A stretch of 64,000 nt of DNA from Tubulanus polymorphus (taxonomy: Eukaryota; Animalia; Nemertea), in contig NC_134031.1 of the NCBI RefSeq assembly GCF_964204645.1, positions 6,200,001 to 6,264,000 of the forward strand. The letters run 5' to 3'. Position 1 is the first letter of the stretch, and each line of letters begins with the position of its first letter. The notes under the pieces are model-generated. The model ran no database searches and was not told the origin of the DNA. It worked only from the letters and a program-made list of their open reading frames with translations. The translations under genes and the position numbers were made by a program. Shown in pieces: positions 32,910-63,900 of this stretch.

Positions 32910-34575
32910 TTAAGGCCGGTGAGCTATTATGTTTTATTTTTGTCCATCCGATTGTCCATAGACAGAATCCAGTTACTTCGGGAAGAATCCAATATCTCAA
33001 AACATATTTTAGATGCTTATTTTTAAGCTATTTTTGCTGATTAAGTGGTTCGTTTGTTTTAAGAAAATTTCTTTATTTTCTCGAATGCTGTAAAGCGTGG
33101 AGACTATTTTATGGTTCTACGCTACATGAATAGATTATTATTATTATCATTATCAATTCAGCGGAAAGCGAGTTCAGCCTTGATTGGAATTGATTGGCAT
33201 GATTCAATAAAACAGTGATAACATCTACACTTGAAAATTAACCATCAGATGCACCTTTGAACATTGTATCACATTGATGTTAAGGGCAACATTGTTATTA
33301 ATACAAGTTGAATAGACACGACCAACTCAAAAAGTCGACTTATTTACTCGAAAAGTCTAGTTACGAATTCGAAAAGTCAACTTAATATCTCGAAAAGTCA
33401 ACTGAAAAAGTCGGAAGTCGACTTACTAATTCGAAAAGTCGGTTTTTTCAACTCAAAATAAAGTGTGTTGTTAGCTGAATTGCTCTTCCGTACTATGACG
33501 AGATGATTTCTATGGTGGTTGATAAGGGCCACAGGTAATAATGTTTACGTGACCTCGATTATAGAAAAACGCAAAACGAAACTACGAAACTAAGCAAAAA
33601 CGATAACTGCATTTTTGCTTCCGCGCAAAAACGAAAAGATTCTTTTTTTGCTCCATGATTTTTCGTTTTTGCTCCATAATATTCGTTTTTGCGCCCTTGT
33701 TTTTTGTTTTGCATTTTTCTACAATCGAGGTCATATAAAAAATAATTCATTAGAGCAAACACGAAAATATTACTTGAAAACGAAAGCAAACGAAAATATT
33801 ATGGAGCAAAAACAAATATTTTCCTTTTTCCTAGATGAAATTTCGTTTTTGTGCGAAAGTTCGCTCTTGCGTTTATGTAGTTCTTCTGGTGATCACGCGA
33901 AGCACGTTTATTCGCTTACGCTTATTGCTCTATCTCGACTAAATCCATTGTTGATCGGCATGCTTTTCAGAGTAATTTTTTGTGAACGATTTTCGTTTTT
34001 TTCATCTCGTCTGAAAAATTGAAATAAGACGTGCAAGCAGGATGCATATGAATTAAAACATTCATAGGGATGGGCCAGCCTAACTGCAGATTTTATATAT
34101 AGAACGACGACATTTTTATCTAAATAAAGAAAGCTATAAATCACTCGCCTATGCATCAATTTTAGACTATAAACCTAGGAGAGAATAAATTATTTAACTG
34201 TCATCCCTTCCCCCATTGCACCATGCACAGGGTCCAGTGCCTTAATTCTAAGTACAGCCAGTTGGCCAGCACTGGATCCTTCGTAACCGTATATAGTGCA
34301 CACTGACCTACTAACCTAATGTTCCACTAGATGGCGAACTAGTCAAACCTGACAGCCCAAACTGATTAAGCAGTAGAGCTGCCTTACAGTCGTTTAGATG
34401 CATAAAACACTGATAGGTGGCGCTAGCATTTGGAATTTGCGCTTTTGAAAAATGCGATTCAATGTTTTTCTTTTTAGTAATCCCACACGAAAGAGTTTTT
34501 TGGCAATCTACGAGGTATTGTTTTCGTTGAGAACGTGATAAATTTCATGACTTTCAGAGGTCAAAGATAAGCTTA

Positions 34576-34784
34576 CAGTCTTAAGTCCGTTATAACGCCA
34601 TCTTTTTTTAATGGCACTGCTCGCTTATAGCGCCAACATTTTTCAACGAACAATTTTTCTTAAGGAGTCCATGATCCAACTTCATTTCAATTAAAATTCC
34701 ATTTTTCATAACACCAAATTTATTTCAACGCCACGTTTTTCATTGGCGTCCCAATATTGGTGGCATTATAACGGACTATAACTG
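34576..34784. mobile_element. Tc1/mariner-type MITE
   Basis: TA|CAGTCTTAAGTCCGTTATAACGCCA ... TGGCATTATAACGGACTATAACTG|TA. Confidence 0.65.
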
Positions 34785-35681
34785 TATTGGTAAGTTCCAC
34801 TGGTATATACCGGGGTAATGTAAATTAACGGTAGAAATTCTTACCCACTGGTTTGCTCTTCAAATCATCGATTTCTTTTTCGCAAATGCTTGTAACTATA
34901 TCAATTAAGCAAACAGAACTTTTTACATTTTTTTGCGAATGGCAATCATTAAGATTGAGTAACCATGTCCAAACTTTAGCGTAAGGCATCGGGTATGGAT
35001 AGTATTGGCCCATCTGTTCCATCTGAGGCAAGATGACGGCTTGCTTATATTTGGAAAATATTGGGAATTTGTCTCAGAAATTATGGTGAAACTTACTTTG
35101 CTTTGTAATGATGACGAGGCTTTCATCAGCTGGAAGTGAAAAGTGAAAAGAAACGTAAGTATTCTGTTCAGTCTCCATTTATTGAACTACGTTGGAACCT
35201 CGTTGATACGAATCTTGTGGGCAAAAATGGAATTGTCGTAATAAACGGGTTTCGAATTATCCAAATCTTAATACAAATATCTTAACCAGATAATGCTGGT
35301 AAGAATCGTAATAACGAGGTTCTGTATCGATTCAATATCAAAATGGTACCTCCGATATTTTCTTCGTCGATCTGTTTAATAAGAGCCTCTACAAAAGACA
35401 CATTTCCAGTAAGTAAGTAAACTAATAGAGAATGAAAACGACATAAATAAATCTAGACCGATGTAATCGAGTTGGCAAATCTATCAGCGTATAGTGTTCT
35501 GCTTTTTTTCAAAATTCTTCTTTATCGAAATAGTGTCACAATAGATATAGAAATATTCTGCAAAATCTAAAGATTACAAATATCATATTCATTCTCAAAT
35601 CAAATTCATTTTTTTAGTCTCCAAATTTAGTTTTATTCCAAATTCTATTAATATCTTTATGCAATATGGCAGACACGCCTT

Positions 35682-36407
35682 TGTTATGGGTTTAGTGTCA
35701 GGATGTTTACATGCCATTCGTCTCTAAAAATCTAAAGATTAACCAAGCCTGACTTTGAAGACAATCAATAATTAAATCCCTCGCTCCCTGTTTGTTTAGT
35801 GTTGTTTACCGAGGTCAGCTGTCAGATTTGTGAGTCTGGTGGCTAATCAGCCAATGATATGTGCCTCCGACCCCGAGCTTGTTTGGGGTGGAGCTTGAGT
35901 CAAGGATGTCCAGCTCAGGCCTGGCTTGGTCATTCCTGCTCATGCTCTCGTTGAATAAAGATATCAACTACATATTCATTGGTTTGTCTTCAATCAAATT
36001 TCAGGTAAGCCATACTCAGATTCTGCTATATTTTTAGACTCTTTAGGCCTTTTCTTAATAATAATTATTCTAGGATTTATATTAGATTTTAAATTCTAAT
36101 CTCAGACTTTCAATTAGCTTTTAGCTAGTTTCCATTAGATTTGAGAAACAATTATTTTCACACAATATCCTTCCCGATCTTCTGTCAAAGCTAGCTATCT
36201 AAATTAGCTTAATCTTTATTAGTGTAATCTATATAAAATAACAAGATTATCTACTATCTAGAATAATGAATATAGATATATAGAAATTTATAGAATTAAT
36301 TGAAAAGGGAAATATAAATGATTAAAGCGCATATCTATAGTACCAATCTAAACACTAGTGTCATGTAAATATTTATAATCGTACTAGAATAATAATAATA
36401 ATAATAA

Positions 36408-36450
<43 letters not shown>

Positions 36451-36699
36451 CATTATTATTATCATTATTATTATTATTGGTTATCTTCATTGCTGAAATA
36501 CGAAACTGTTATTATAATTATTTCATAATCATATTTTCTAATTCTTAATTTTCATATGATAATTAATTATTGCATAATCACATTTCTTACTTAATACTTC
36601 TTGAAAACTTGTCATTCCTGCTCATGCTCTCGTTGAATAAAGATATCAACTACATATTCATTGGTTTGTCTTCAATCAAATTTCAGGATCGCTATAACG
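35682..36699 (+). mobile_element. Solo-LTR-like element with exact 76-bp internal direct repeat bracketing an intron-like spacer
   Basis: TGTTAT...ATAACG termini; 35929-36004 identical to 36611-36686, each with AATAAA; (AAT)n/(ATT)n microsatellite at about 36388-36478. Confidence 0.5.
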
Positions 36700-36899
36700 T
36701 AGTTTATTGTGGTAATATACACAACACTACAAGCGCATTAATCCATGACCAGTTTCACAGTTGTGAGTAAAGATTTGACTCGGAGTTAACTAATCGAAAA
36801 TTAACTAATTTTAACTCGGAGTTAACTCTAACTGATGACTGTGGAACTGGATCCACCACGTTAAGGCTTAGTATCTAATTGCCGAGAAAGATTTACCGG

Positions 36900-37087
36900 T
36901 ACAGCGGCACCTCGTTATAACGAACTCGGATACAACGATTCATCGGATATAACAAATATAGAATCTCATCCCAAGTAAGAAAACTTAATCGATTTCATAC
37001 TGGATATAACGACGAACTATCCGTTATAACGAACTATCGGTTATAACGAACAGATTTTCTGATCTCGTGAAGTTCGTTGTAACGAGG
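36900..37087. mobile_element. pogo/mariner-type MITE
   Basis: TACAGCGGCACCTCGTTATAACGAAC ... GTTCGTTGTAACGAGG with internal TATAACGA repeats; relative at about 35178-35326. Confidence 0.6.
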
Positions 37088-37237
37088 AAGCATTTTGTGA
37101 AAGTTTTGTAAGTTCATACACCTCTCTCAGACACATTTAAGTCATAGATCTTAGGAAGAGAGTTCAAATATCCGAATAACCATAGAAGCGATAACATTAA
37201 AAACCTCATTTTCTAATGAGTAAATACAGTTTATTAA

Positions 37238-37274
37238 CACGAACGTTTTCGGGATCATATCCCCTCATCAGGTG
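37238..37274 (-). ncRNA. Minimal hammerhead ribozyme in inverted Penelope arm
   Basis: Reverse complement of 38882-38918. Confidence 0.8.
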
Positions 37275-37616
37275 AAATACAAGTGAATCAAATGATTAAA
37301 CTACAGGTTTATATACAACATAAGTTACAAAATTACAAGTGCTAAATTCTAAGCTAATTACAAACCAAGTATTTAATTACAAACTAATTATTTGAATACA
37401 TTTAGGATAAAGGATGAGCCGTTTTGAAATAATTGTTGATTTAAAGAGGGTCGTTGCGCTTTAATAAACAGGGCCTCCCTAATTTTACAGTCGAGATCAG
37501 ATGAACCTTTGTCCATAATTTTGAATTTGTTGTTACTGAATTCCTGATCACAAGTGTGACAAATTGCGAGATGTTGTCCAATCGCAGAAGTCTTTGATCT
37601 GTGTTCCTTAATCCTG

Positions 37617-38768
37617 ATGGCCAAATGTCGTTTAGTTTTCCCATATGATCAGGCTACATTCAAAGAATTACTTAAAATCGCAACTTCGGGTTTGTTTATG
37701 TACAATGATCGTATTTTCAAGCAAGTTGATGGGGTCATCATGGGCAGCCCCTTAGGCCCAACCTTAGCGAACTTTTGTCTTGCCCATTTTGAAAACTTGC
37801 TCCTCTCCAAAACTAATTACAAACCGACATTATACCTGAGATACGTGGACGATATTTTCGGCATATTTCGAAATGTATCCAGTTATAGACTATTTTTTGA
37901 AGAATTGAATCGCCTCCATTCTAACCTTAAATTCACTTTTGAACTAGGTCCTAATCTATTACCTTTTCTCGATACCGAAATACAAATTCCGTTAGAAACC
38001 GGTAGTGACTTTATATCTCGAGTGTACAGGAAAGCTTCCAACACAGGCCTACTTTTGAACTTCAACGCCATGTGTCCGTATAAATGGAAAATAGGACTCA
38101 TCAATACCATGCTTTTTCGTGCCTACAATATTTGCAGTGATTGGACCATCTTTTCAGAAGAAATCAATTTCTTGAAAAATCTGTTTAAATCTAATGCGTT
38201 TCCTATTCATGTCATCGATCAATGTATTAATAGATTTTTGAAATCAAAACAGAACTCAGAACCTCAACCGAAACCTGTTGAAGATGGAATTGATCTATTC
38301 ATTTCATTACCGTATATTGGTAACCCGTCAATCCTATTTGCCCGAAAATTAAAATATCTATTTAAAAGGAATTTTGAAATCAACTTGAAATGTGCATTCA
38401 CTACGACCAAAATTAAGAATTTTTTCTCTTTGAAATGTGCTACCCCTAAATCGCTGAAGGCTAAAGTCATATATAAATTTAATTGTTTATGTGATATAAA
38501 CACTTCCTATATTGGGAAAACTAAACGACATTTGGCCATCAGGATTAAGGAACACAGATCAAAGACTTCTGCGATTGGACAACATCTCGCAATTTGTCAC
38601 ACTTGTGATCAGGAATTCAGTAACAACAAATTCAAAATTCTAGACAAAGGTTCATCTGATCTCGACTGTAAAATTAGGGAGGCCCTGTTTATTAAAGCGC
38701 AACGACCCTCTTTAAATCAACAATTATTTCAAAACGGCTCATCCTTTATCCTAAATGTATTCAAATAA
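37617..38768 (+). CDS. Penelope-like RT (C-terminal part) plus GIY-YIG endonuclease; start codon is a junction artefact
   Basis: FKQVDGVIMGSPLGPTLAN, YLRYVDDIF, LPFLD, VYRK; VIYKFNC...SYIGKTKRHLAIRIKEH...IREALFI...PSLN. First 9 codons derive from the inverted arm. Confidence 0.9.
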   Translation: MAKCRLVFPYDQATFKELLKIATSGLFMYNDRIFKQVDGVIMGSPLGPTLANFCLAHFENLLLSKTNYKPTLYLRYVDDIFGIFRNVSSYRLFFEELNRLHSNLKFTFELGPNLLPFLDTEIQIPLETGSDFISRVYRKASNTGLLLNFNAMCPYKWKIGLINTMLFRAYNICSDWTIFSEEINFLKNLFKSNAFPIHVIDQCINRFLKSKQNSEPQPKPVEDGIDLFISLPYIGNPSILFARKLKYLFKRNFEINLKCAFTTTKIKNFFSLKCATPKSLKAKVIYKFNCLCDINTSYIGKTKRHLAIRIKEHRSKTSAIGQHLAICHTCDQEFSNNKFKILDKGSSDLDCKIREALFIKAQRPSLNQQLFQNGSSFILNVFK

Positions 38769-38881
38769 TTAGTTTGTAATTAAATACTTGGTTTGTAATT
38801 AGCTTAGAATTTAGCACTTGTAATTTTGTAACTTATGTTGTATATAAACCTGTAGTTTAATCATTTGATTCACTTGTATTT

Positions 38882-38918
38882 CACCTGATGAGGGGATATG
38901 ATCCCGAAAACGTTCGTG
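38882..38918 (+). ncRNA. Minimal hammerhead ribozyme in Penelope pseudo-LTR
   Basis: CAC-CTGATGA-G-GGGAT-ATG-ATCCC-GAAA-ACGT-TC-GTG; palindromic AACGTT stem III. Confidence 0.8.
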
Positions 38919-40998
38919 TTAATAAACTGTATTTACTCATTAGAAAATGAGGTTTTTAATGTTATCGCTTCTATGGTTATTCGGACATTTAAGTCATATT
39001 CATTACAAATCCCGTCGTTTAAACATGTAGTGAACGAAACCGCAATACGAGGTTTCACGATTAAATACTTTTGTTTAGGACATCTATAATCTTACCAGTG
39101 TGACTTTGAAGCCTCTGTCGGATATATGAACCTGAAAGACGTGAAAAACCACTAAACGTAATTATTTGTATATATTTTTACATAGCATATACCATCGATC
39201 CAAAGGTTTTGATTAGGTAATTCAGAGACCTGACTAAGACTACTATTTGAGAGTGGTTTCTATTCTTTAAATAGCTCAACTACTCCCGAAAATCTCGAAA
39301 TGCTCTCAAAATCTGAATAATTTTGAGTGCATTTTTAATTAAACTATTTTTTTAATCTCAGAATACTCTCGTTTTGTTTGTGAAAACTATTAAGAATAGA
39401 GCTATATCAGGAAATCTGGTCAGGGTATCATAAGAACTGGTATAAGCATTGAGCAATTGAAATACATTTATCATGTATGAATTATTATTACTACTTTAAA
39501 TATGTCTATCATACGATGAATATCGCTAAGTGCAGCAAAGAGGTAATAACAGGGTTCTCATGTGATCGAACATCCAGCGGTAGGTAATGATATACTCACT
39601 TGCATTCTCAGCAGAAAAAGTAAAGTTTTTATCTGAAACCGAATTCGTAATAAAGATTTATTCGTGTTAGATATACGGTACACATTTTGACACCTGGATT
39701 AAACGAGTCGATGACAAATGCCATTGCCCTTGCCGTCACGAGCAGAAACGGGCGCAAAAATTATCGCGTTACAATCGAAGGTTAATTTTTGGCAATTTTC
39801 ATTTGGATTTACATACCACAGTTCTGATGCACGTAACCGAAAAGCAAAGTCCTCATTCGAGCTGAAAATACATGCAGAAGTACCATATTCACGGGGTTTT
39901 ATTGTTCTGGACGCTTTGTTTCATAAATCTGGCTAATTGTTAGAATGCCACGTCCAGATTGGCTAGAAATGTTGTCTTTTAAAAGTCACTTTAACCTACG
40001 AAAATATCATGTTTTTTAATGTTGTTTTAGATATGGTTTGAAAGAGTGAGAGCCGAGAAACATAGATATTTCTGTATATAGGAATTTCGTTTAAATTGCT
40101 ATAAAAGGTCTTTGGGTCTTTAAGGTCATCATGATATTTCTATAGAAAACAGCTAGAGTTTCATATATATTTTGTACAGATCCTGTATATCTATCTGCTT
40201 TCACGTTCATACCTTTATTAATTTCGATGGCTTCGCCAATGGCATTCCGAGCATGTTCCTCTAAAAAGAGAATAAAAAACAACATTTAAAACGCAATTCC
40301 TAATATGCATTTATGCTGATGACTTGGAAATAGTAGAGCAATCGAACAGTTCGATCTTACTAGCCGACCGACCGGCTGGGGTCCCGGATACATAATACAC
40401 ACCCTGACCGGTCACCAGTCACCACACCTGACTGGTCACCAGTCACCACAGCTTAATGGGTCACCATACTGACCAGACAAACTTAGAAGCTCGGGCGGTC
40501 ACCGGAACTTGGTGGTCTAGTGGTTAGATGACAAAGCTGGCTAGGGTTAGGGTTAAGGATATCCCCTGTTTGAATCAAGGTTTAGGTTCATGTTTTGATG
40601 CTATTTTGAACTGTTTTTCCTGTATAGGACTGATAGACATTTTTCAACCTGTTCATATGTTATACTATTATATATTTCATCATTTACAATGAAGTTTTGT
40701 ACAAGGAATATTCATATTCAAATCAGTTACATTTATATTTCACACAATAGTAAACTTCCACAAATCTGGGTTAATTGTGTTGAATTCGTGAGAATTGATT
40801 TTCTATTCGCTGTTAACAATAAATCTTACAAATAAATTGTAGCTGTCGCAAAGTCTTAATAACATCTTAACATTAAAGTTAAATCAATTTTCCAATACGT
40901 GTGAAAACACGGTCAGTTCCAGATCATTCCTCAACCAGTTAATAGACTCTCAGTCAGTCAGTACCCACTCAGACAGTCGGTACACTCTCTTGAGCCTC

Positions 40999-41949
40999 AT
41001 GAATTCCACTCAGATTCAAATTGGTGGAACTTATAACAGTTACATCGTTCTCATGTCTGTGGTAAACAGGTCTGGAATCCACCGCACTGTGTCACTGGTC
41101 ATTCTGCCTATCTTGTTCCTGCTTGGAGCGTTTGGAAATTCAGCTACTTTCCTGATAATGATAAGTCGCAGATTCCGCAGTTTATCCTACGCGAACTATC
41201 TTATCGGTCTTTCAGTGTGTGATTCCATATACTGTACAAATTCTACACTGATGCCGGTTTTACAGTTCGTTCTCTTGCATTTAAAAACAGGTCCTATATT
41301 CATGATGAATTCACTGATCAGTTGTCAAATCTATGAAATTGTATTCGCGGTTGCAGTCATCAACAGTTCGTGGTTTATAGTAGCAATATCTCTAGAACGT
41401 GCGGCAGTTGTGCTCTTCCCGTTCACATCTCGTTTGATATGTACACCGAGATTCGCTAGATTTGCTATATTGATAATTACTGCAGTGAATGTACTGGTTC
41501 TATATCTCACACCCGGTTTGTCGATGCTTTTCACCAACCAGTTCATAGGATGTTACTATAAATTATTTGACCAAATAAGATTTTTCCTCATAGTTGTGAT
41601 CCACGTGTACCTTTTACCGTTAATTTTTATCATTATATCAAATTCTGTTATAATAATTCAGTTATTCAGAGGTTCAAAAATGGTTTCGTCTGATCAGAAA
41701 ACTACGAAATCAAAACGTACAACAATAATGCTTGTAACAGTTTCACTCGCATTTGCAATGTTTACAGTTCCAAACACTATTACTGCAATATTACCAGTCT
41801 CGCCGGAGCAAAGAGATTTTCTTTATGACATTTCCACACAATTCTTAATGTGTAACTATGTGGTAAATTTCTACATATATCTCTTATTGGGGCGAGAAAT
41901 TCGTGAATATTTTTGTACGAAAATCCGCTGTAGAAATTTAATCAAATAA
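40999..41949 (+). CDS. Intronless class A GPCR, divergent peptide-receptor-like/chemoreceptor-like, 316 aa
   Basis: Seven hydrophobic segments; GN in TM1, LSVCD in TM2, Cys atop TM3, SLER (DRY equivalent), P in TM5/TM6, NFYIY (NPxxY equivalent). First ATG at 40999. Confidence 0.88.
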   Translation: MNSTQIQIGGTYNSYIVLMSVVNRSGIHRTVSLVILPILFLLGAFGNSATFLIMISRRFRSLSYANYLIGLSVCDSIYCTNSTLMPVLQFVLLHLKTGPIFMMNSLISCQIYEIVFAVAVINSSWFIVAISLERAAVVLFPFTSRLICTPRFARFAILIITAVNVLVLYLTPGLSMLFTNQFIGCYYKLFDQIRFFLIVVIHVYLLPLIFIIISNSVIIIQLFRGSKMVSSDQKTTKSKRTTIMLVTVSLAFAMFTVPNTITAILPVSPEQRDFLYDISTQFLMCNYVVNFYIYLLLGREIREYFCTKIRCRNLIK

Positions 41950-44719
41950 CCATTGATTTCGAGTATGATGAAACATACAATTTTTTTTATTCAGTAAAAC
42001 GTAGACACAAATAGTACTTTACAAATTAACTGATGCTATTTTATTTCTATACATATATTTAGTAGCTTCATCAGGTAAATGAGTCACTGTATGAGTAAGC
42101 TATAAAGTGAAGTCTTTTACGTTTTACTGAGGTTGCGACACTTATTCTAGTTTTATATTGTATGGTTCCTGACCAGACGTCTTATTTTTAACTTCATAAA
42201 GCACACTAACGACAACTAATCATCATTAGTTGGTTAACTGTATGAGTTTACAACCAGTAGGAGTCAATCTCGTTTTCTGTATAGCTGTATTATGGGGCTT
42301 TCATGACATATATTATTTGGCTTTCGTGAATTATATCAATGGGCTTTCAGGAAATCTTATTGAGCTTCAGTTATCAGCGGTTAAACTAATACAACAAGTA
42401 ATATACAGAAGCTGGAGTTCATGGCCTGTGTTGCTATTATTACGAGACAACCTGCGTTGATGCTTGCGTCATACATAAACAATAAATATGTAATGTAAAT
42501 AAACATGTCTGGATGTGACGTATGTATCCGCGTAGGGAAACCTTAATATGGCGCGGCTGAGCTCTGGCGAGTGCAAAAGGTATTTTTAGAATATTATGAA
42601 GAGTGTGGAATATAAACACTCCATACATGGGGCGGTAGAATGTTGTGACGCATGAATGCGTCGCAATCCGTGCATGCCAAACCATATGCGGTGTTTCCTC
42701 AAGCGTTACTAAACAGTAAAACGATATAAAAAGGGAGGGTTTTTTAGTTAAGTTAGGTTTTAGAGTGAAAGGAGTCAAAGTTTAGCTTTGGGAAGAGATT
42801 GTAGTCAGACGAGAAGGAAAAGCAAATGCTTTATTTAGAGATAGAATGTATACATCCGGCTAAGAGAAAATAATGATGGATAGATAGACTCAGTTGTTCG
42901 AGTTGTTTTAGAGGATTACAAGTGGGTGAGATCTTTCCCAACATCACAAGTAAGAAGATTTACACTTAAAACCTGATACTGAAGAAAAGACACAACCACA
43001 TCGATGGTGGACATTTAGCAACCATAGCAGCTGTATCAAATTGGTATTCGATTTACGGAGACACTAATAAACGCGACGCTATAGTTCGTGCTTATTTGAT
43101 GGAGCAATGAAGAGCCTTTGTCTCGGGAGTGAATGACCGACAGGTCATTTGGAGTCATGTTGTTGGAGTCATGGAGTCATATAATCTAAACAAGTGTGCC
43201 TCGTCGGAGGAGAGAAATACTCAGAACGCACAATTCCAGATGGCCACCTCGAGTAGGGATGATGACATCTTGCAAGATGGTGAAAAACCCGAAGCACACT
43301 GTAATGGATGTACAAAATGCAGTAAGATTGAAAATCTATTACAGGCCGTATTGCAGAAAGTTAGTGTCCTGCCTGAGGTAAATGATAAAGTTGACAAAAT
43401 GTTGGTCTCCCGAAACGCCGTAGACTATCTATTTAAATCTTGCACGTTAAAGAAAATGATAGGGGTTAACTATTTCATGATTTTGAAAGGGTTAGGGTAG
43501 GGGGCGTGAGGAGGAGCTAGTAGCAATTCTGACTTACCTATATACGATTTGGTGTCTGAAGAATAAAGAAACGAATCTACATTCATGAATCTACATTCGG
43601 TCAATTTATTAACGGAAACATGTTAAATACGATGAATGAAAAAATTCTCACATTTTAAATGATGGATTTTCCGTGCCTTTAACAATTCTGAAATACATAT
43701 ACATATATTTATATATAAAACTTAATTTATTAGAATGATTTACTAGGTAGACACGAATGGGCTAGGGCATGCAAGCAGATAGGACGAAAAACAATGGCCC
43801 AGAAGCTATCTTACCGGTTGCACATCCATTCACAACCCAGATGGCCTCTTTAAGCATATTTTCCATGCGCGAAGTCAATGTTGATTGGCCAGTCACAGAT
43901 TCGCCCGCCTTTTCTGAAAGAAATAACTTCGAATGATTGTGACTGCATTTATCTATATCGATTCGGCCATCCTTCCGAATGCATACGTATCTCTTTAATG
44001 ACGACCTGCAGGGCCATGCCCCTATGTAGGGACTCCCAACACCAAAAAGCATGATTGCCTATTTTTGGAGTTTGGTCGTTACGTTGAAGATGAAACTACC
44101 CGACTGCTTGATGAGGCGATTTACTTAAAGGATAGCAATCTGGATACAAGGGCATGCTTTTTGTGACCTGATCCACCGAGTACGTATTCTGTCTGATGTA
44201 TGGTGGCTGATGAAGGCCATTGAAAAATCAAGGCCTGCGCAAGCCGATTTTTTTTTATGCGCAAAAAACGCGAGGAAACAATTATTCTGTATCGGTTTTC
44301 TTTCGCCAAGAAAAAAAAACTTTTTTGTAAATTTGCTTGTTTGGAACGCAATTTTAGGTTGACAGCTATCTGTTGAATTGTTACCGAAGTAAGAAGTCAC
44401 AGATGACCCCATTTTGACGGACTGATGCGTTTGTCAAAACGTCAGTCTACGCTGTGCGTTGATAATAGATGTACTGTAAATTTTCTAAAATATTTGCCCC
44501 ATGGCTATATCTTAAGTGAGTAAACTCTGACTGAGAAATTTTTTACAGTGTTATACATTTACAAATCTGTGCACTGTGTAAGGTTTCTGAGAATGGATTT
44601 TGCACGCTGTTGTAAATTGTACTTGATTCCGTTTCTTACAACTGCTATCATAAATATGACATTACGAATTTTCTCGGGTAATCATTCTTTAGTGTCGATG
44701 TTAGGGAGTTCTGCGAATC

Positions 44720-45673
44720 ATGAGGAATTTTACTGAAATGCTGGTTGCTAGACCTTACAAGAGTTACATCGTCGTCATGTCTTTGGTGAACAAATCTGGT
44801 AGCTACCGCGCGCTATCAATGGCAATATTAGTCATTCTATTCATGCTTGGTACCTTCGGAAATTTATCTACATTTATGATTATGATAAGTCGCAGATTCC
44901 GAAGTTTATCTTATGCCAACTATCTCATTGTTCTGTCTCTCAGCGATCTTATGTACTCCGTCAATTTTACGCTAGTGCCTTCGTTACAGTTGGTTCTCTT
45001 GCATCTGAACACCGGGCCAGTGTTCATGATCAATTCACTGATCAGTTGTCGAATGTATGAAATCTTGATGGGACTCGCTTCTTCTAATAGTTCCTGGTTG
45101 GTAGTGGCAATATCTCTAGAACGTGCGGCAGTTGTGCTCTTCCCGTTCACGTCTCGTTTGATATGTACGCCGAGATTTACGCGATGCGCAATCGTCCTTA
45201 TATTCCTAATGAACGCGTTGATAATCGGAATCTACCCAACATTAACGATGCATTATTCTAAGCAATACCTTTTTTGTTATTTTGAAATATTTCATCAATT
45301 TATATACTTCATGATCATCGCCGTCCATGTTTATCTGCTACCTTTATCGCTTATCGTCGTATGCAATGTCGTAATAATATTTAAGTTATTCAGAGGTTCA
45401 AAGATGGTTTCGTCCGATCAGAAAACTACAAAATCAAGACGCACTACAATAATGCTTGTAACAGTTTCGCTCTCATTTACAGCGCTTACACTACCGTCCT
45501 CTATTATTGTATTATTACCATTAGCCACGGAACAAAAAGAATTTGTTTTAGATTTACTCACTCAGTTCATTTTATGCAACTACTCAATCAATTTCTACAT
45601 ATATCTTTTACTGGGACGAGAAATTCGTGAACATTTTTGTGCAAAAATTCGCTGTAGAAATCAGGTCAATTAA
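44720..45673 (+). CDS. Intronless class A GPCR, tandem paralogue of 40999-41949, 317 aa
   Basis: Colinear with the first copy: MISRRFRSLSYANYLI, AISLERAAVVLFPFTSRLICTPRF, LFRGSKMVSSDQKTTKS, NFYIYLLLGREIRE. Confidence 0.88.
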   Translation: MRNFTEMLVARPYKSYIVVMSLVNKSGSYRALSMAILVILFMLGTFGNLSTFMIMISRRFRSLSYANYLIVLSLSDLMYSVNFTLVPSLQLVLLHLNTGPVFMINSLISCRMYEILMGLASSNSSWLVVAISLERAAVVLFPFTSRLICTPRFTRCAIVLIFLMNALIIGIYPTLTMHYSKQYLFCYFEIFHQFIYFMIIAVHVYLLPLSLIVVCNVVIIFKLFRGSKMVSSDQKTTKSRRTTIMLVTVSLSFTALTLPSSIIVLLPLATEQKEFVLDLLTQFILCNYSINFYIYLLLGREIREHFCAKIRCRNQVN

Positions 45674-45988
45674 CGATTGATTTCGTTATTCGTATTACTG
45701 TTCAACCGTACTGGTATTCATGGTGTAGATTCAGTTCGCCTAAAGTGATTGAAAACCCAATTGTCAAAGTCGTAGAAATAGTATTTTCCATAAACTTTCG
45801 AAACGTACTTACTCAGTTCCATCTCGGCCTGCCTTGTCAATTCTGAAACGGAGGAACACCGAATGTAAATAAATATGAACGAAAAGAAGGTTAAGAATGA
45901 GGTGGGTATACATCTACCTAACCAGTGAACATATAAAAAATGAATGAGCGAAACAACTATTTCGTCACAAGTACAGACATATTTCAGA

Positions 45989-46070
45989 GAGTTTAAGTGT
46001 TATTCTAGACTTCAAAGTAAGCAGCAGTGAGTTTAAGTGTTATTGTAGACTTCAAAGTAAGCAGCAGTGA
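45989..46070. repeat. Two-copy tandem repeat of about 40 bp
   Basis: GAGTTTAAGTGTTATT(C/G)TAGACTTCAAAGTAAGCAGCAGT x2. Confidence 0.85.
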
Positions 46071-46514
46071 TATGTTGAATTCTATAAAACATTCTAGATA
46101 GAATTTTGAATGGTCTTGGCATGCTGCCATGTCATGCCATGCCAGGTTACTAATCCCTTTCTAAAGTTGGACTAAAAGCAACGTGAAATTTAAACTGCAG
46201 TTCGGTTACCGCAGTATAAGTCTGCAGGTTTGTTTCTTAACTATGGAAGCTTATTTGAGAACAATAAAATATTCGAAGAATAGATATTATAGCTGCACAG
46301 CAGCGATAACAGGTCTTCTGCACAGCCTTGTGCGCAGTGTTGTTCTTGTCTGGATATTGTGTCGACCACTATCGCGTTTATCGACACAGCCGCACCAAGC
46401 TATTGAAAATTAAGGGAATTTTGAACGTGAACACGGTTTTATAAAAGGAAGGTCTACAAACAGTCAATTAGGCCTATTCGAAACGATGGATAACTGGACC
46501 AGATGCTTTAACTA

Positions 46515-46770
46515 TAGTCTCTATGGATTTCGAAAAAAAAAATTGATAAGGTACATCAGAGATAACAAGCAACTAGGAAACGGTCGAGTATCAATGATGT
46601 GATGCTTAAATGGCTCAGCAGTTTTATCCGATCGAAAACAGATGGTCAAAATCAACGGAACTGTCTCATTTCGGAAATAACTAGTGGAGTAACGCAAGGT
46701 AGTGCCCCAAGTCGTCTTCACTGGACTGATAAATGATATGCCAGATGGAATCTCCATAAAATTGGAAGAA
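46515..46770 (+). pseudogene. Decayed CR1/L2-type LINE reverse transcriptase fragment
   Basis: Frameshifted remnants of DFxKAFDKV and SGVxQGS...INDM motifs. Confidence 0.55.
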
Positions 46771-46844
46771 TAATGATGAATTTCTCGGCTTAGGCTGCAG
46801 ATTGATAACCACAGTATGATACGCGTGTTTTGCTAAGGGCTGGC

Positions 46845-47860
46845 TTACGAATATTTATTTACGAATATTTATTTACACTCCAACCATTTCCATGGTATAT
46901 GGAGGAAAACAGTATTTACAATAATTACATAAACAGTAATAAAAGCTACAAAACTTAATTAACTGGTCTCACACTTATGTACAAAATATACTATTTACTA
47001 TTTACAATACATATATTTACAATACATACACTACCGGAGGGATTTATATACATCTAGACCTATTTTGATGAATTTAGTTGGATTTTTTAATACATCTAAG
47101 TTCCGAAAGGTATTTATATCTAAGTGGTTTTCACGGGGTTCGGTAAGCAAATTACAATCGAAAATAAAATGTACCTCGTCTCCTAAAACGTTGAAGGCGG
47201 GGCATAATCTATCGGTTCTGGGTAGATGAAGGTTTGATAATCTATTTACAGGTAGGAGATAAGACCCAATCCTGAACTGGAATAAACTGGTCACTAAATC
47301 GTCATCAAGCTGATTAATATAGTTTTCAAATTTAATATCCTTCTTATATTGCCTAAAATTAGTGTATAGCGAGTTATTATTCAACTTAAAATCTATCTCT
47401 TGTACGTGCTGGTCTCGGAGTACACATTTTAATTTCTTTGAGAGTGTCATAGAGTTAACCATTAATTGCTGCGTCCAAATATACGATAGACCGCAGTCAT
47501 CAAAAATCTTCTTAATAAATAACAGCCAGGGGCTCTTAAACCTGTCATTAATATATAAATTGAGAGATATTTTATAAAGGATTGAACTTAGTTTAGTTTG
47601 CTTGCACGATACCGTTTTAGCCCAAAAATTGATCATTCTACGCTTTACGTCAATATACATAGGATAACGCCCTAGTTCTGCCAGCACTTGCACATTATGG
47701 GAATATTTCGTAACTTTCATAATAATTTTACAGAATAAGCAGTGGAGGTTTTCTAGTAAATCGAGATTCTCATAACCCCAGATTTCGCAGCCGTATAGTG
47801 CTACAGGAGCGACACACATGTCAAATAGTTTAAGCATTACATCTATCGGAAGTTTCAATG
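46845..47860 (-). mobile_element. 5'-truncated non-LTR retrotransposon (RTE-X-like ORF2 C-terminus plus 3' UTR)
   Basis: ORF 47858-47031: LKLFDMCVAPVALYGCEIWG, VLAELGRYP, QFRIGSYLLPV, RLC...GDEVHFIFDC; tail (TAAATAAATATTCG)x2 at 46845-46874. Confidence 0.85.
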
Positions 47861-47919
47861 TCGATCTGCGACGCGACGCCTACCGACGAAACTGAAAGGA
47901 ACCGCGATCGTAACCCAGC

Positions 47920-50900
47920 TTATGTCGACTGCGCTCCAATCCCAAACAACTGAGGCTGACTAGCGGGATATAAGATCCGCCGCTTCCCAATATCGGTTAC
48001 GATCACTGGCAACTCAAATGACTGCAGATGGTCATGCGATAAACATTTTGAGAATAAATTTAAATGCTGACACCGAATGCTTTTCAAAGGTTACGTAAAT
48101 AACTTACCTTCCAAGTTACGATCTATTTCTGCGTGGAATGTATCTTCCAGATAAATTACTAAAATTACAGATTATCTTAGAATAAGTTACCGTGCCCCAT
48201 TGATTCTAGAACAACTATCTAGGGACAATACTCACGGGCATTCTTCCAATTGATACACAAACATTTCCTCGGATCTAGAAATTCATGAACATGGAAATAT
48301 AAAGCTAATAATGTGTAAGCTAATGATGTGTAGGTTTATTGTAAATCCATCTTTTTCGGCTAGATAGATATCTTCGTTCGTACGATTTACGTGTTGGTAA
48401 ATGTATACAATTGGTCATATCAGGGCCGTCGGAACGGGGCGGCAGGGGCATATCTTTATAGTATATTTTTGCTGGACTGAAAAATTTTGATGTAGCCAAC
48501 TTTTGGCATGATGTACTTTTTATTTCTTTTATCGAATTCATATTATTATTATGTTTGGATATAAGACACCGAGATATTCAGAAATTTTTTTTAAATCTCA
48601 TAAATTCTTTTGTAGTTGATGAATATCGTTATCAATGTTATTTCCTCTCGTGATAGATATCACGATTTCCATGATCAGATTCAGTCGGAATCGATCTCAG
48701 AGCTTGGACAAGTCTTGGGGAGGTCCCCAGGCCCTCCTGGCGTGCCTTCACGCCTCTGGTGCTCAGCTGCATTTAATCACGTACTGGAACCAGTTCGATC
48801 AAAAAATCAATAGCCACCCTACTGCATATAGGGATATCAAAGTAATTTTGAATACATACCTGTGTTTTGTGGGATTTCTAGGTGATCGCCGGATAGATCT
48901 AGTATATTTTTGATTTTATCACCTGTAGAAAATGAAGTATTTGGTAAAGGTACCAGTATAGAAAATTTCGATTGATATTTTGCTTGAATACTTCACTAGA
49001 ACGAAATTGTTTTCACAAAATGTTGTATTTCGTGGTGGGGCGTTTCACTGGAAATCGAAAGATGAAAAACCGTTTAGGACAGGTCAATCCCCCTATCAGG
49101 CTCAGCCCCTAGGGCTTGGGGTTGTCCTTCTACATTACATATTTATCTATGAAATTATATTCAAAGAAACCATGTTCATAATCTTCTACATATTATAAGT
49201 AAATAAATCATCAACTATCCACTGTTTAACTCTAACCAACTTTTGAGCAACTGCAGCCCTTACTCCAAGCTACCGGACGTGATTTGTTTTTTCAGGGATC
49301 ATATAAACGACAACATATGTTAAATGTCAAGGGTCAGGATGGGTTAACCCCCATGCTCTCGAATCATTTCTTAGATTTAATTAGATGAGTCGTGATAGAC
49401 TGGGCAGATCTCAAAATTCGAGGCTCTTACCATTTCCTGTCACATTCACCAATTCATCTTGACTCTTTCTCTTTATATACTCGTCTGAAAAAAACAAACA
49501 AAACGAAAAACGATATTTGCTATATAAGTATGCAAATTGATCAAGCTTTCTTTTTTAAACGTGGTAGATATACAGTAGATCTTTATTCGGAATATCAGAA
49601 TCAAGAAACCCGTCAATCTCGGAAATTGCACCGAGGCAGACGAATCCAGACAGCCCCGGTAAATACATCGCCTACTAGAGTTGGCTACAAGAAACATCGA
49701 CATTGTTGAAATATCAACTTAATAAGTCATTTGAATGACGAATTCGACTGACTCTAAGTGCTAGATCATAAGTGACACCAGCTTTGCTGGACACTTGCCA
49801 TGAGAAATACGATTTTAAAAAATCTCAACTTAAAGGTTGTTTATTGTTTCGACCGTAACACGTGAATTTATACTTTTCAAAAAATAATATCTAGTGAACT
49901 TACCAACTGTTTTTTCCGTAGCTGAAAATAAAACATATACACATAAACACGTATTGATAAAAGTCTGCTACAAACAGCCGAAATTTATGAATCGGCGGCA
50001 GTCGCTGAAAATACCCGCTATGCACACGTTTAAAAGATGATTGAACGAGGGGTCTAGGTTGAACTAGGACAACATGCCCGCTAGGGAATTGGTTTGAAAC
50101 GCTCAGCAATCAGAAAATTTCAATATTCAATGCCCCTGCCCTGGTGAACATATCAAGAAAGAATGACCTTGAAACCACCGCAATCATAGAAAATGTCATG
50201 AGCTACGATTTTGCAATTGATTGTGGTGAAAGATATGCCTAGGGATCAAGTTATTTGGCTATTCAATGCCCCTTGGTGAATACATGTAGAAAGCAATGAC
50301 CTTGAAACTTAGCACAATCATAGAACATATCTCAAGCTACAATTTTACAAGGTACCAATATGATATATACCAATCTATATAATTCAATATTCAATTATAT
50401 TATGGTGGCGAGAAAGATTAACATTTTTTTCTACTTACGAATGAGGACTGGAGACACTAAGATGGCAGCTGATTGCGTCACGCTAGACTGATCAAAAGAT
50501 TAGTCTGATATCTTTAAGATCCCTTCCCGAAGTTTACCCATCACGAATTTCGATGAGAGAGCAAACCACTCGGAAGCTAAGTCTCGGGACAAAAATGACC
50601 TTTTTTAGGCACAAAAACATCACAGGAAGGCCATCTTGCGTTCGATTTGATACCAAACTGTAAAACCCATTTTTCTCATGCTGATGAATCATAAGGAGAT
50701 ACGAACTTACTATAAAAATCAAGATATATGATTGAAGTGTCTTCAAAATTTCCCTTGAAGACCTCAAAAAAATGTCAAACCGAGCCAGTTTTTGGACTGA
50801 ACATTGGTCCAGGATAGATACATGTATATACCAAAGATCAAGAAAATCCATCTAAGTGAGTGTCTTCAAAACATCCGGCAATAACGGGGTTCCGTCTATG

Positions 50901-53057
50901 GACGGACAGACGGACGACGAACACTAAGCGAACGCAATAGCTCGCTGGGACTAAAGTGCCAAGTGGGATAAAAAGATTCTAAGTGAAATGAAGATGACGC
51001 ATAGATGTAGTTAAGTCCTTATTTTCATGATATTTTAAAATTCCTAAAACGGTCCTATTCAAATAAGTAATGACGTGGGATAAAATTAGCGGATGAACGT
51101 CAGAACATCTTCTATATCAAGATACAGGGTTAGTTAAAACAGTTACCGGTACTTACGCTCAAGCAGAAGCATACCATTTTTGTTCAATACATCTGCAAGA
51201 CAATTTGAAAACAAAACCGATCACAGATATTCTCGGAACTTTTTCAATTAATGACTGATCTAATGATTCAAACTCACCGATATTAAGTGTTTCGTAGAAG
51301 TATTGCAGCTCAGCGCTGAGCATTTCTTCAACTAAAAGTTTTCAAAGAATAACGATTATGAGTGGCCGTGTCAGCAGTGATCAGGTTTGCTAATTATCAG
51401 TTACCATCAAGCTACGTGATCTACGGAACCCTTTTTTGGCGTTTTAGATTGAAATTGAATTTGATTTGTAGCTCCACACCTTCATCCTAGGATTTCTATT
51501 TCAGTAGGCCTGATACACGTAGTATTTGATATGCCGATGTAGAACAAAAGCGGCGATGCTTACTATCGTCGGCTTTTGTTGAGGCTGACATTCTTCCGAC
51601 CAAAGGCCCTAGCAGGATTTTCTGCATCGCTAAATCAGGATAGAAAATGCGCGATCGATTCATTTCGTACTATACCGGAAGGTATCATAAACACATACAC
51701 GATCGCTATCATATCGTTATATTTATGGAAGAAATATCGCGCTTACCAATTTCTGTAACGAGAGGCCTCACTTTCCAGAATTTGAGCGGAATATTAAAAT
51801 CATGATCTACAAAATACGAGTGAAGATATAACTTCGCGTTTTAGTATTAGTAAAAACTCGCAAACAAAAATAGAAAATAATGGAACAATATCTTAGTTAT
51901 TGATATTGAGCTACATCGTCTCGGTATTTGATACTAAGTTGAATGAAGAGAAATCAAACAAAGAACATTACTTGTAAATAAGACAAACCCTACAAGTAGA
52001 TAATATGATCATTTTCAAACATATTTCCGCGTGGGTGTTTTTCACACTTTAGGAGTATTCTAAGTTTATCTAAACCTTGATTGTAGAAGGCCATTGACTC
52101 AGGATCTGTCAAAACTTTGAACTGGAGTTTTATATGTATATAGGTAAAAATTTACAAACTGTAACGGTATTTACCAGGTAGATCCGACTTGTGAATGTCA
52201 TTCTTACGTGCCCACTGTTTTACCTTTTTTTCAATTGATAGGAATTCTAAAAATTTTAGAAACTACATGCATCACCTGGGACCCGATGTTGTACTGCGGT
52301 ATAGGATTTATTAAGCGAATATGATGCCAACCTTTATCGTAAAACCGATACCAAACATCATTACGTACGTCCCTAAATGACGACCGGTCTGCTAAAATGG
52401 AAAAAAAATTTTTTGAAAAAAGATTTCAATGTCCATCGATGTTTATCGAAAAATGCTGATCTATTGAAATAGGCGTTGATATTTGCGATATCTAGAAAGG
52501 TAATACAAAGTTCGTATGTTTTTATTGGTCCAAAGTTTATCATAACACGAACTCACATTTTTCGCTGTGATTAATGTCATGACCTGCAACACGAATCATA
52601 TTCTCATGTTTGGAGTAAACCCCATTTTTATCATCATATATTTGAGCGCCTAGTCTGTGTTATCTAGCTAGTAATTTCCAGGCATTCTACTTTTTCTTAC
52701 CGATTTGACCTTTTCGTCGCCATCGACCACAGAAAGTGGTCACGAAAAAGCAAAATATCGTTGCCATCATGGTAAAAAAGTATACAATAACAGCAATCCA
52801 TTTGGAATCCATCCCTAATTAAGAAATCAACAATTCTTATTTTTAGACGAGAAACAATGTACAACATTATACCCGAAGTAGGTAGGCCTTAGTGAAATGA
52901 ACGTATGAATTGAACCCGAATGGTATTCTGTGAAGATTTAGTCTATTAGTAGTTTGAGACATTCCAGAAACATATATAGATATTAGTCTGAACTAGCGAT
53001 CTCAGAAGCTTAAACGTTTATCTTACCGTCAACCGGTTTAAGCTTTTTTCCTCGCAT
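47920..53057 (-). CDS. Putative orphan single-pass membrane protein encoded by symmetric phase-1 micro-exons, about 270-295 aa
   Basis: Predicted exons (minus): 53057-53027, 52814-52701, 52583-52557, 52391-52365, 52246-52208, 52105-52076, 51989-51972, 51806-51747, 51629-51564, 51331-51278, 51192-51157, 49921-49904, (49684-49610 uncertain), 49484-49431, 48922-48860, 48274-48236, 48158-48108, 48005-47920(TAA). All AG/GT bounded, internal lengths multiples of 3, one open frame. Confidence 0.7.
50062..50973 (+). mobile_element. Helentron-associated (DINE/HINE-like) non-autonomous element
   Basis: Internal repeats with TGACCTTGAAA, (GGAC/GACA)n microsatellite at about 50900-50920, subterminal hairpin then A run at the 3' end; accounts for the single long intron of the micro-exon gene. 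Confidence 0.55.
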
Positions 53058-54789
53058 ATGTTAGTCTAAAATCTTTGTGTCGAAAATGAAAGGCACTTGG
53101 TGTATAATATTCAACGAGAACTTTGGTCGCTGTATGGCGGGTATCGATCGAGTGTGACATAGTTTCACATTAAAAATGATTACGAAACAGGAAGTATATT
53201 TTTTAACACGACGACACACTCTGTTGTTGTAGATACAAAAGCAAATATTTCGTTGATGGTAACCGGTCGGGGCTTTTATTGCCGTCCTACATCGTCCTCG
53301 GCCGAGTCATGAGCAAAGAAACGTCGTGTTCAGGAATCGTAGTCATTAACAAGAAAGCTAACTTGCAAGTTTATTGACGCTTTTAGGACACATATATTGC
53401 TTGATATTTTAGACTACATAGACGATATTAAGGATCAATAAAGTTATCTTCGATTCGAATATATCGATAATTGAATTGAATTGACCGTCAACAAGTCTAG
53501 CCCCGATATGTTGATGACGCAGTGAACGTCCTCTCGTTAATAATTATCAAAATTTATCAAAAATAAAATAAGAGACATGAAATACATTTTATTACAAAAT
53601 AGATGCCAAAATTCACTATTGCGAATTTTTATTTTGAAACGCCAATATTGATGACGTAGCGCACATTGACTCAGACAGAACCCTTCACTGAACACGAACA
53701 CGGTTTTCACGGTGTCAAAAATCATCTTATCACTTCCGGGAATACGGTCAGAAGTCGGGATCTGGATCTGGGCCGATTGGTAGTAAATGGAGCCTTGATA
53801 AAAAGGGCTCGATTCCCACAGTCGCATTCTTTGGAGCCAATGGAAAATAAGGCGTTCTTCCATTTTTACGTGTATTTATTTCAATTCAATTCAAATATGT
53901 TCGCGCGCAAAATGAATATCAATGTGACACAATATAACTGCGTTTAAATGATGTTCATACGGAAGCGTCTCGGGGACATCATTGACGAAACAAATTTGAT
54001 TTTCGGTTGTGGTTTTTTTAGCAAAACAAAATGACATGAATTGTTTCTTTTGCTCAGTTAGTTTACAAACCAATAATTCGTCAGTTTGTTGTTATTTATA
54101 TGTCTCGGAGCAAAGACCTGTCTGACAGTAATTGGTGTAATTAACAGTTTAGCAAAACATTAGTCTGTAATGAAGAATGTATAAAATGTATCATTTTTAA
54201 TGTAAAGGACAGCCTGTGTTTGGAGTTCTTTCTAAAAGGACATTCTACCAACCGGGCAATATTCAGCGAGTCGAAAATAAATACGTAAAATCTCATGAAC
54301 GAAAGCTTGACGAGTTGCTACTTGGAGTTCTGATCGGAGTATTCTACGGTAAACACTGAAGCGAGTTAACTGTTGTTAAAATTTAACTCAACAAAAATTC
54401 ATCTACGATTGATTTGATATTTTCTCGATTTTATATCGCGTTATTATCGACATAAGATAATTTACGAACAAAAAAAAAAACAAAAATCTGAATTAATGTC
54501 GAGGTGAAAACTGGATATAAAATCGGGAAAACCATGAATTAAGATACCATATAATTCAAATTTCTATTTTTCATAAATGATGTCACCAGGTCGATTCCGT
54601 AGTAGTGGTTGATGGTTAAGATTGTACGCTTTTCATTTGGGAAGCCTATTTTGCTCTTGACATTTTGTTCTCGAGTGGCTGAGGTGAAGTGCAAACGCGG
54701 TAAGAATTTGGTGTCGTCTAAAATTATAAATGATGTAGTAATTCCAGTTGCTCTGGTGAGAAAATACCTGATGCCGAAAACTGATGTTT

Positions 54790-63200: not shown

Positions 63201-63900
63201 TCTATGTTCAACTATCATCATCATGCTATCGTATTTAATGAGCGGAAAAAAATCACGAAAAGGTGCACGTTTGTTGAGCGGTGTTAGTGGTTAGAGGGAT
63301 CGACTCTGAGAATCCAGGTTTTGTGTGTTCGAACCCTGTATATGACGGTAGTGCCCCGGGCAAGAGACTTATCCACATCGCCTCTTTCCACCCAGGAGTA
63401 AGTGGGTACCTGGTCTGCCTCCTGGGCGCCTAGTATAGCTGCTCGCACGTAACTTCTCCCCGGGTAGAGATGACTGTTACATGGTAAGAGTTATAGGCTG
63501 GGGGGTAATAATACCGATTTAATGCAAAGCGCTGTTAAACATTGTATCGGTGGAAAGGTCTCAAAAGAAATTTAATTACTACGTCTATATCGCTAGATTT
63601 ACGTACGTGAAACATAGGTGTTCCATCCTTGGTCACCCACCCGATCACCATATCTGAGCCTTTCATTGATCCGGTCGGAGACAAACCGAAACCGACGTAG
63701 CCAGTAGTCTCCACCGTCACCTTAAACGTGAGGAATCTCTTCCGGGGTTCGTCGGACTGGTCGTAGCGCCATTCTAACGAGTACTTCTTCGCGTCGCCAT
63801 CGAGAAACACTTTGTTGGGAAAGATTATCTGGCAATTTGCATCTTGGAAAAACGCCAGGGCTATCGCCAATGATATCGCGGATATAAGCAGGCTCCTCAT
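57260..63900 (-). CDS. MOXD1: DBH-like monooxygenase (DOMON + copper type II monooxygenase domains), 12 exons, about 601 aa
   Basis: Exons 63900-63607, 62603-62451, 62278-62108, 61901-61821, 61434-61255, 60964-60862, 60507-60335, 59756-59565, 59435-59376, 58944-58814, 57657-57549, 57418-57260; 1806 nt in frame. Signal peptide, GYVGFGLSPTGSMKGSDMVIGWV, VHHMLLY, QIHYDNP, DSSG, SHAHLLG, YDFDYQ, CTYNT, GGESTREEMC, hydrophobic C-terminus. Strict orthology among MOXD paralogues not established. Confidence 0.92.
57898..58282. mobile_element. Fold-back MITE family B (TIR CATCCTCGCTTGCCAGGGTTTGAT)
   Basis: Long imperfect inverted arms with AGCCAATC/GATTGG motifs; second copy 58992-59286. Confidence 0.7.
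58684..58803 (-). mobile_element. Penelope-type pseudo-LTR fragment with truncated hammerhead
   Basis: 9-bp TSD TGATACTTA (58675-58683, 58804-58812); minus strand ACGATGATCTTTAGGGTGAGATCGAAACGTCG lacking the CTG of the core. Confidence 0.65.
58992..59286. mobile_element. Fold-back MITE family B, second copy
   Basis: CCCTCGTTTGCCAGGGTTTGATTGCC ... GGCAATCAAACCCTGGCAAGCGAGG. Confidence 0.75.
59858..59899 (+). ncRNA. Minimal hammerhead ribozyme (Penelope-type), antisense to MOXD1 intron
   Basis: CCAC-CTGAAGA-T-GGC-loop-GCC-GAAAC-GTC-GTGG, followed by GTGGGATTTCT as in the 31196 element. Confidence 0.75.
63272..63535 (+). mobile_element. tRNA-derived CORE-like SINE, second copy
   Basis: Colinear with 27121-27441 (GTTCGAACCC, CCCCGGGCAAGA, CACCCAGGAGTAA, GAGATGACTG, GGGGTAATAATACC). 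Confidence 0.8.

Follow-up and report, generated by a model that had tools for sequence, protein, structure and literature searches.

The micro-exon genes (MEGs) of schistosomes hold about 80% of their coding region in symmetric exons of 6-36 bp, and their secreted or exposed products occur in variants that arise from differential splicing (PMC5825161). Consecutive symmetric (1,1)-exons are also found in human genes, which were surveyed by Schad et al. 2013, with tau/MAPT among the examples (PMC3632108). Here we describe LOC141908058, a RefSeq gene of the nemertean Tubulanus polymorphus (assembly size 268 Mb) whose product is named "uncharacterized protein" and whose internal coding exons are all symmetric and of one phase. 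It lies on the minus strand of the window, a stretch of 64,000 nucleotides (nt; positions 6200001-6264000 of contig NC_134031.1, G+C 37%), whose own numbering is used below. An initial annotation, made from the sequence alone, had described the 5′ half of the gene as a hidden gene with 16 internal micro-exons. No paper joining "micro-exon" with Nemertea was found in the literature searched.

Compared with the schistosome MEGs, LOC141908058 shows a similar long and unbroken series of short, symmetric exons, flanked by a 5′ exon encoding a hydrophobic segment and by a 3′ terminal exon; its product is likewise an orphan restricted to its lineage, with at least one of the small exons subject to alternative skipping. 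It has, however, no sequence similarity to any described MEG family, and its exons are larger. The internal exons range from 18 to 114 nt with a median of 46.5 nt, and those of 36 nt or less (9 of 24) amount to 267 of the 1257 nt of the coding sequence (CDS), which is 21% compared with about 80% in MEGs. Whereas MEG products are small and secreted or exposed, the product of LOC141908058 has 418 amino acids (aa), an anchor helix of 24 residues and a probably intracellular bulk, and the gene is a single-copy one in a free-living nemertean with two recorded splice variations. LOC141908058 is therefore MEG-like in architecture and is not a member of a MEG family, and genes with such an architecture also exist outside the parasitic flatworms.

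The likeness to the human symmetric-exon genes is that successive exons share one phase, so that inserting, duplicating or skipping any of them preserves the frame, and that alternative exons tend to be symmetric. In the human genes the successive exons are often homologous by tandem duplication and encode disordered regions, whereas the exons of LOC141908058 have no mutual similarity and encode a hydrophobic-rich sequence predicted to be helical. The run in LOC141908058 is also exceptionally complete, as it includes every internal exon.

Exon-intron structure of LOC141908058

The gene was identified by using exon 2 alone (52702-52812, minus strand) as the query among 1.84 billion representative proteins. 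A single protein of 417 aa was obtained, with 100% identity at residues 12-48, and it corresponded to XP_074653960.1, isoform X2 of T. polymorphus LOC141908058; the sister isoforms in the set X1-X4 (408-418 aa) have 418, 409 and 408 aa. The initial claim of a hidden gene is thus correct in that a real multi-exon gene invisible to scans of open reading frames (ORFs) is located here, but the gene is not hidden, since RefSeq annotates it.

To determine the exon borders, the isoform X1 protein was mapped to the minus strand, and each junction was set where the joined neighbouring blocks yield the X1 sequence. X1 was colinear with the window in 26 coding exons (53057..33967, minus strand), and every junction showed AG/GT and had a single solution (Table 1, which gives the internal exon lengths in order). 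Every one of the 25 introns was in phase 1, and the 24 internal exons, which account for 94% of the CDS, were without exception symmetric (a multiple of three in length, phase 1-1). The chain of symmetric phase-1 mini-exons that had been proposed is in agreement with this mapping, and a listing of all AG...GT intervals on the minus strand that are a multiple of three and stop-free in phase 1 recovered every exon that had been described. The exon ended in G at 17 of the 25 junctions, and the split codons were mostly GNN. Several donors in the RefSeq model are weak (GTTGGC, GTAAAT and GTACCA), despite the presence of stronger donors in frame.

Table 1. Features of LOC141908058 and its surroundings, in window coordinates
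Feature	Position	Strand	Remark
Exon 1, coding 31 nt	53027..53057	-	ATG 53057-53055, closely preceded by a stop in frame; phase-1 intron with donor GTAAGA
Exon 2, 114 nt, phase 1-1	52701..52814	-	encodes the sole hydrophobic helix (~residues 16-39) and RWRRK
Exon 3, 27 nt, phase 1-1	52557..52583	-	cassette; missing in RefSeq isoforms X3 and X4
Exon 4, 60 nt, phase 1-1	52332..52391	-	tandem acceptor TAG/CAG (52391 or 52388); weak donor GTTGGC
Exon 5, 72 nt, phase 1-1	52175..52246	-	donor GTAAAT
Exon 6, 60 nt, phase 1-1	51747..51806	-	X1 mapping
Exon 7, 66 nt, phase 1-1	51564..51629	-	X1 mapping
Exon 8, 54 nt, phase 1-1	51278..51331	-	X1 mapping
Exon 9, 36 nt, phase 1-1	51157..51192	-	followed by a 1235-nt intron with a multi-copy repeat (~50066-50982)
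Exon 10, 18 nt, phase 1-1	49904..49921	-	X1 mapping
Exon 11, 54 nt, phase 1-1	49431..49484	-	X1 mapping
Exon 12, 63 nt, phase 1-1	48860..48922	-	X1 mapping
Exon 13, 39 nt, phase 1-1	48236..48274	-	X1 mapping
Exon 14, 51 nt, phase 1-1	48108..48158	-	last correct exon of the initial annotation
Exon 15, 30 nt, phase 1-1	45813..45842	-	X1 mapping
Exon 16, 99 nt, phase 1-1	43815..43913	-	X1 mapping
Exon 17, 36 nt, phase 1-1	43652..43687	-	X1 mapping
Exon 18, 18 nt, phase 1-1	43538..43555	-	X1 mapping
Exon 19, 48 nt, phase 1-1	40213..40260	-	X1 mapping
Exon 20, 45 nt, phase 1-1	39817..39861	-	X1 mapping
Exon 21, 33 nt, phase 1-1	39600..39632	-	X1 mapping
Exon 22, 36 nt, phase 1-1	39096..39131	-	X1 mapping
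Exon 23, 39 nt, phase 1-1	35350..35388	-	weak donor GTACCA
Exon 24, 33 nt, phase 1-1	35097..35129	-	X1 mapping
Exon 25, 51 nt, phase 1-1	34845..34895	-	X1 mapping
Exon 26, last coding part, 44 nt including TGA stop	33967..34010	-	X1 mapping
AATAAA, likely polyadenylation signal	33907..33912	-	54 nt past the stop codon
Two extra micro-exons of the initial annotation, intron 5	51972..52105	-	52105-52076 (30 nt, donor GTTTAG); 51989-51972 (18 nt, donor GTAATG)
Short interspersed repeat, ~210 bp, intron 14	47858..48065	-	contains the terminal exon of the initial annotation
Multi-copy retroelement-like fragment, intron 14	46860..47858	-	275-aa ORF 47031-47858; abuts the ~210-bp repeat
Rhodopsin-type G protein-coupled receptor (GPCR) ORFs, intact, intronless	44720-45673, 40990-41949	+	introns 15 and 18, opposite strand to the mini-exon gene
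Penelope-like element ORF, intron 22	37617-38768	+	RVT_1 and GIY-YIG, both under the Pfam cut-off
DBH-like copper monooxygenase gene	59340-63900	-	directly upstream, same strand; DOMON, Cu2_monooxygen, Cu2_monoox_C

Exon chain compared with the genome background

The splice sites of the chain consist of pyrimidine-rich YAG acceptors and of donors that are mostly GTRAG. In the stretch covered by the initial annotation, GTRAG donors numbered 16 on the minus strand versus 2 on the plus strand, and the chain uses 12 of the 16; three of the four unused ones are located in repeats and one within an exon. The background rate was determined with a frame-blind rule, by which a GTRAG donor is combined with the nearest YAG acceptor having at least 10 pyrimidines in 15 positions, and the null consisted of the window and twenty 10-kb samples taken arbitrarily from this genome (200 kb). 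Under this strict rule, 12 symmetric, open phase-1 exons were found over the whole gene, where the rate in the rest of the window predicts 0.88 (Poisson P = 2e-10); for the 5.1 kb initially described, 7 were found and 0.24 were expected (Poisson P = 7e-9). Both strands of the genome samples together gave 19 such exons in 400 strand-kb, with a maximum of 3 per 10 kb, which is the same background rate, and the length of the exon candidates in these samples was divisible by three (L mod 3 = 0) in 31%. A null count had been proposed in the initial annotation, and its result, with the gene far above the rest of the window and the 20 samples, excludes a chance origin of the exon chain and places the architecture outside the genome norm. 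In accordance with that, the uniform phase is not a genome default, as had been claimed from neighbouring genes: the 20 samples are at background, and the DBH-like gene directly upstream has exons of 81-180 nt in phases 0 and 2, according to Pfam matches on the exon translations.

Comparison of the initial exon calls with RefSeq

Eleven of the 16 internal exons initially called are exact in RefSeq (114, 27, 60, 66, 54, 36, 18, 54, 63, 39 and 51 nt), two have the correct acceptor only, and three are absent. The two partly correct calls differ at the donor: the second 27-nt exon had been ended at 52365, compared with 52332 in RefSeq (60 nt), and the first 39-nt exon at 52208 (GTAAGA), compared with 52175 (72 nt). 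Both misplaced donors are stronger than the RefSeq donors, in frame with them and 33 nt upstream. The exons of 30, 18 and "(75)" nt are present in none of the four RefSeq isoforms; the 30- and 18-nt pair is frame-compatible. The 3′ end was also misplaced, because the proposed terminal exon (48005-47922) is located wholly inside an interspersed repeat of ~210 bp and outside the CDS, and the gene, instead of ending at ~47922, continues for 14 kb to 33967 through 12 downstream exons that had been missed. About a third of the exon calls and the 3′ end were thus wrong. A practical warning follows from this comparison: genes of this kind are overlooked altogether when only ORFs are scanned, and a manual model guided by the frame was misled by a repeat-derived terminal exon.

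Isoforms and transcript evidence

The splice variation recorded in RefSeq consists of the 27-nt cassette exon 3 and a 3-nt NAGNAG acceptor of exon 4 (1 aa), which together give the four isoforms. When single-exon skips were computed, 22 of 24 kept the frame open. In-frame skipping is therefore possible for almost any internal exon, and it is recorded for the one 27-nt exon only; apart from the recorded variation, splicing is probably constitutive. As far as is known, NAGNAG and cassette variants are made by the NCBI Gnomon pipeline only from transcript alignments. From the presence of both kinds of variant, together with the choice of weak donors over stronger in-frame ones, we infer that the RefSeq model implies transcript evidence. 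The segment 47600-53300 was carried by three sequencing runs as contiguous genomic DNA, without GT..AG joints.

Comparison of samples revealed a substitution in a second sample, 52701 C>A (plus strand), at full depth in one contig. The substitution falls on the last base of exon 2; the G that precedes the donor thereby becomes T, and TGT (Cys) replaces GGT (Gly) as the split codon. This was the only difference in unique sequence seen between the samples.

Properties of the encoded protein

Hydropathy analysis detected one hydrophobic segment only, at about residues 16-39, with a maximum of 2.49 at residue 17 in the Kyte-Doolittle score over 19 residues (KD19) and values of 1.1 or less elsewhere. 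It is directly followed by RWRRK, and the single-pass arrangement initially described is supported. These five residues have a net charge of +4, and the eight residues before the helix have about -1. Judged from its sequence, the N-terminal segment appears to serve as an anchor and does not resemble a typical signal that is cleaved off. According to the positive-inside rule, RWRRK just after the helix would leave the bulk of the protein in the cytoplasm. We consider it rather likely that the part encoded by the mini-exons is cytoplasmic and that the product is an intracellular protein tethered to a membrane, neither secreted nor exposed at the surface; such a location would fit poorly with a secreted or gamete-surface role.

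Beyond the helix, the protein contains five Cys and four N-X-S/T sites. K, L, I and E are abundant in it, and its sequence is hydrophobic-rich and not of low complexity. An internal repeat was not found, the best self-alignment score being 41, whereas shuffled sequences gave a mean of 34.6 and a maximum of 44. AlphaFold, run without an alignment, gave mostly helices with a predicted local distance difference test (pLDDT) score of 41, and the pLDDT of the ESM model was 0.38. Taken together, the features suggest, with moderate confidence, a membrane-anchored protein with a single N-terminal helix and a non-repetitive remainder, the helical nature of which is predicted at low confidence.

Orphan and single-copy status

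Searches for homologues, paralogues and structural relatives, as the initial annotation had proposed, supported its view of an orphan without a recognised domain, as no relative was obtained from Pfam, the PDB, the ESM Atlas, the T. polymorphus genome or the clustered proteins. The last of these numbered 5.8 billion, and the whole sequence, residues 40-231 and residues 232-418 matched none of them except the protein itself. No Pfam family scored above the cut-off; CdiI_2 (E = 0.005, 18 bits versus a cut-off of 26.7) was sub-threshold and was rejected as chance, and a PDB sequence match to MESD (E ~0.4) was also rejected. In the ESM Atlas, the best feature score was 0.77 and the template modelling (TM) score was <0.3, both within the noise range stated for the tool. 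A six-frame search of the own genome for protein paralogues gave no match at E <= 1 apart from exons of LOC141908058 itself, with a sensitivity that is low for exons of 6-30 aa and leaves a distant relationship possible. No paralogue was found in the own genome at the DNA level, where only intronic repeats matched. LOC141908058 is probably a genuine single-copy gene restricted to its lineage, already annotated and still uncharacterised.

Origin of the phase uniformity

Phase-1 introns typically have a share of about 0.3, and with this general value the probability that 25 of 25 introns are in phase 1 is 0.3^25 = 8e-14. Symmetric phase is considered a signature of frame-preserving exon insertion (PMC3632108). 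When exons and introns of LOC141908058 were compared at the DNA level, no exon-exon or intron-intron similarity was found beyond overlapping flanks and nested elements. Tandem exon duplication finds no support, there being no self-similarity of exons, introns or protein, and neither does introner-type gain, as no sequence is common to the introns. A constraint of phase compatibility remains, and the uniformity points to a young gene that acquired its exons step by step, to selection that keeps exons skippable, or to a combination of the two. On balance we favour historical exon accretion. At the outset, the anchor exon and the last exon would have been separated by a single phase-1 intron, and small exons would have been added stepwise inside that intron, where only 1-1 exons can insert without a frame break. 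As a by-product of such accretion, nearly every internal exon would have become skippable in frame.

The same symmetry could instead be maintained for its use in splicing, if, as in the MEGs, exons were skipped independently and produced a large repertoire of variants for recognition, immunity or secretion. Consistent with this, the 24 internal exons are all symmetric, 22 of the single skips leave the frame open, a 27-nt cassette and the tandem acceptor at exon 4 are recorded, exons 4 and 5 have alternative donors in frame, intron 5 contains frame-compatible extra mini-exons, and the principle is shown by the schistosome MEGs (PMC5825161). Nevertheless, the four annotated isoforms derive from two events only, the gene is single-copy and has no family, its exons exceed MEG size in both the median and the share of the CDS in exons of 36 nt or less, and the membrane anchor has no obvious cleavable signal peptide and a charge pattern favouring a cytoplasmic bulk, and we regard diversification of this kind as unlikely. 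Alternatively, an old intron-poor ORF may have been invaded by introns through a process, or under selection, favouring phase 1. The protein is non-repetitive, with a composition as in an ordinary folded helical protein, and the G-ending exons at 17 of 25 junctions and the mostly GNN split codons resemble proto-splice sites; however, the introns have no sequence in common and hence no introner signature, the probability of one phase in 25 of 25 is as small as given above for the same general share, and the DBH-like neighbour has ordinary exons in phases 0 and 2. We know of no insertion process that yields 25 of 25 introns in one phase, and intron gain is judged to be rather unlikely.

A further explanation would deny the gene itself, in that splice-like signals in non-coding DNA were assembled into a model, or two genes were fused across the introns that hold transposons and GPCR genes. 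The frame is anchored by no homologue, the AlphaFold and ESM models are poor, and other genes or elements are located in the long introns 14, 15, 18 and 22, all of which speaks for such an artefact. It is made very improbable by the density of sites and the phase coherence far over background (P about 1e-10), by the extreme strand asymmetry of donors, and by the phase-1 symmetry and strong sites that are found on both sides of the long introns; in addition, the isoform differences do not appear to be of the ab initio kind, and a polyadenylation signal follows the stop codon.

Several observations weigh against a transcribed, membrane-tethered protein that grew by exon accretion. Transcription and junctions rest on the RefSeq model, and one run of 2015, guessed to be RNA, had no contig at the locus (47600-53300). 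Exon accretion is a hypothetical history, and most human proteins described as having grown by accretion of symmetric exons differ from this one, which is neither of low complexity nor obviously disordered. The 15-residue flanks have a net charge of +3 on both sides of the helix, so that the predicted topology is tentative, and the AlphaFold model is unreliable.

The single-copy status makes LOC141908058 a clean case for two questions, namely how a young gene can grow by addition of frame-compatible exons and whether splicing exploits the symmetry for variety. A wider system of T. polymorphus, specific to the lineage, by which proteins would be built and varied from strings of same-phase mini-exons, and in which a tethered protein grown in one phase-1 intron has its exons skipped combinatorially in particular cells, seems doubtful at present; if it were true, a MEG-like variation system would have evolved independently in a free-living spiralian, and LOC141908058 would be its simplest case.

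Neighbouring genes and intronic elements

Introns 14, 15, 18 and 22 are long and house other genes or elements. For the ~210-bp repeat in intron 14, at least 40 copies were scored of 323 candidates, and all of those scored were ~80% identical. The similarity ended exactly at 47858 in five fetched copies, and the summed contig depth was 40-70 times the single-copy level. In the adjoining retroelement-like fragment, the 3′ 240 nt were 90-99% identical to many other copies. High-copy interspersed repeats, partly with internal tandem copies, are also present in intron 9 (50066-50982) and intron 11 (49128-49318), with a summed contig depth that is thousands-fold and >4,000 candidates in a first look at the genome.

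The two GPCR ORFs encode 317 and 319 aa and match 7tm_1 with E = 8e-18 and 4e-15, respectively; they are paralogues with 73% identity across 945 nt. The Penelope-like ORF in intron 22 is overlapped by a 478-bp inverted repeat (~38513-38990 and ~37166-37643), the arms of which are 99.4% identical. Outside the gene, a (TA)n/(ATATAT)n microsatellite of ~0.8 kb occupies 18624-19470, and G+C falls to 24% in that 2-kb bin.

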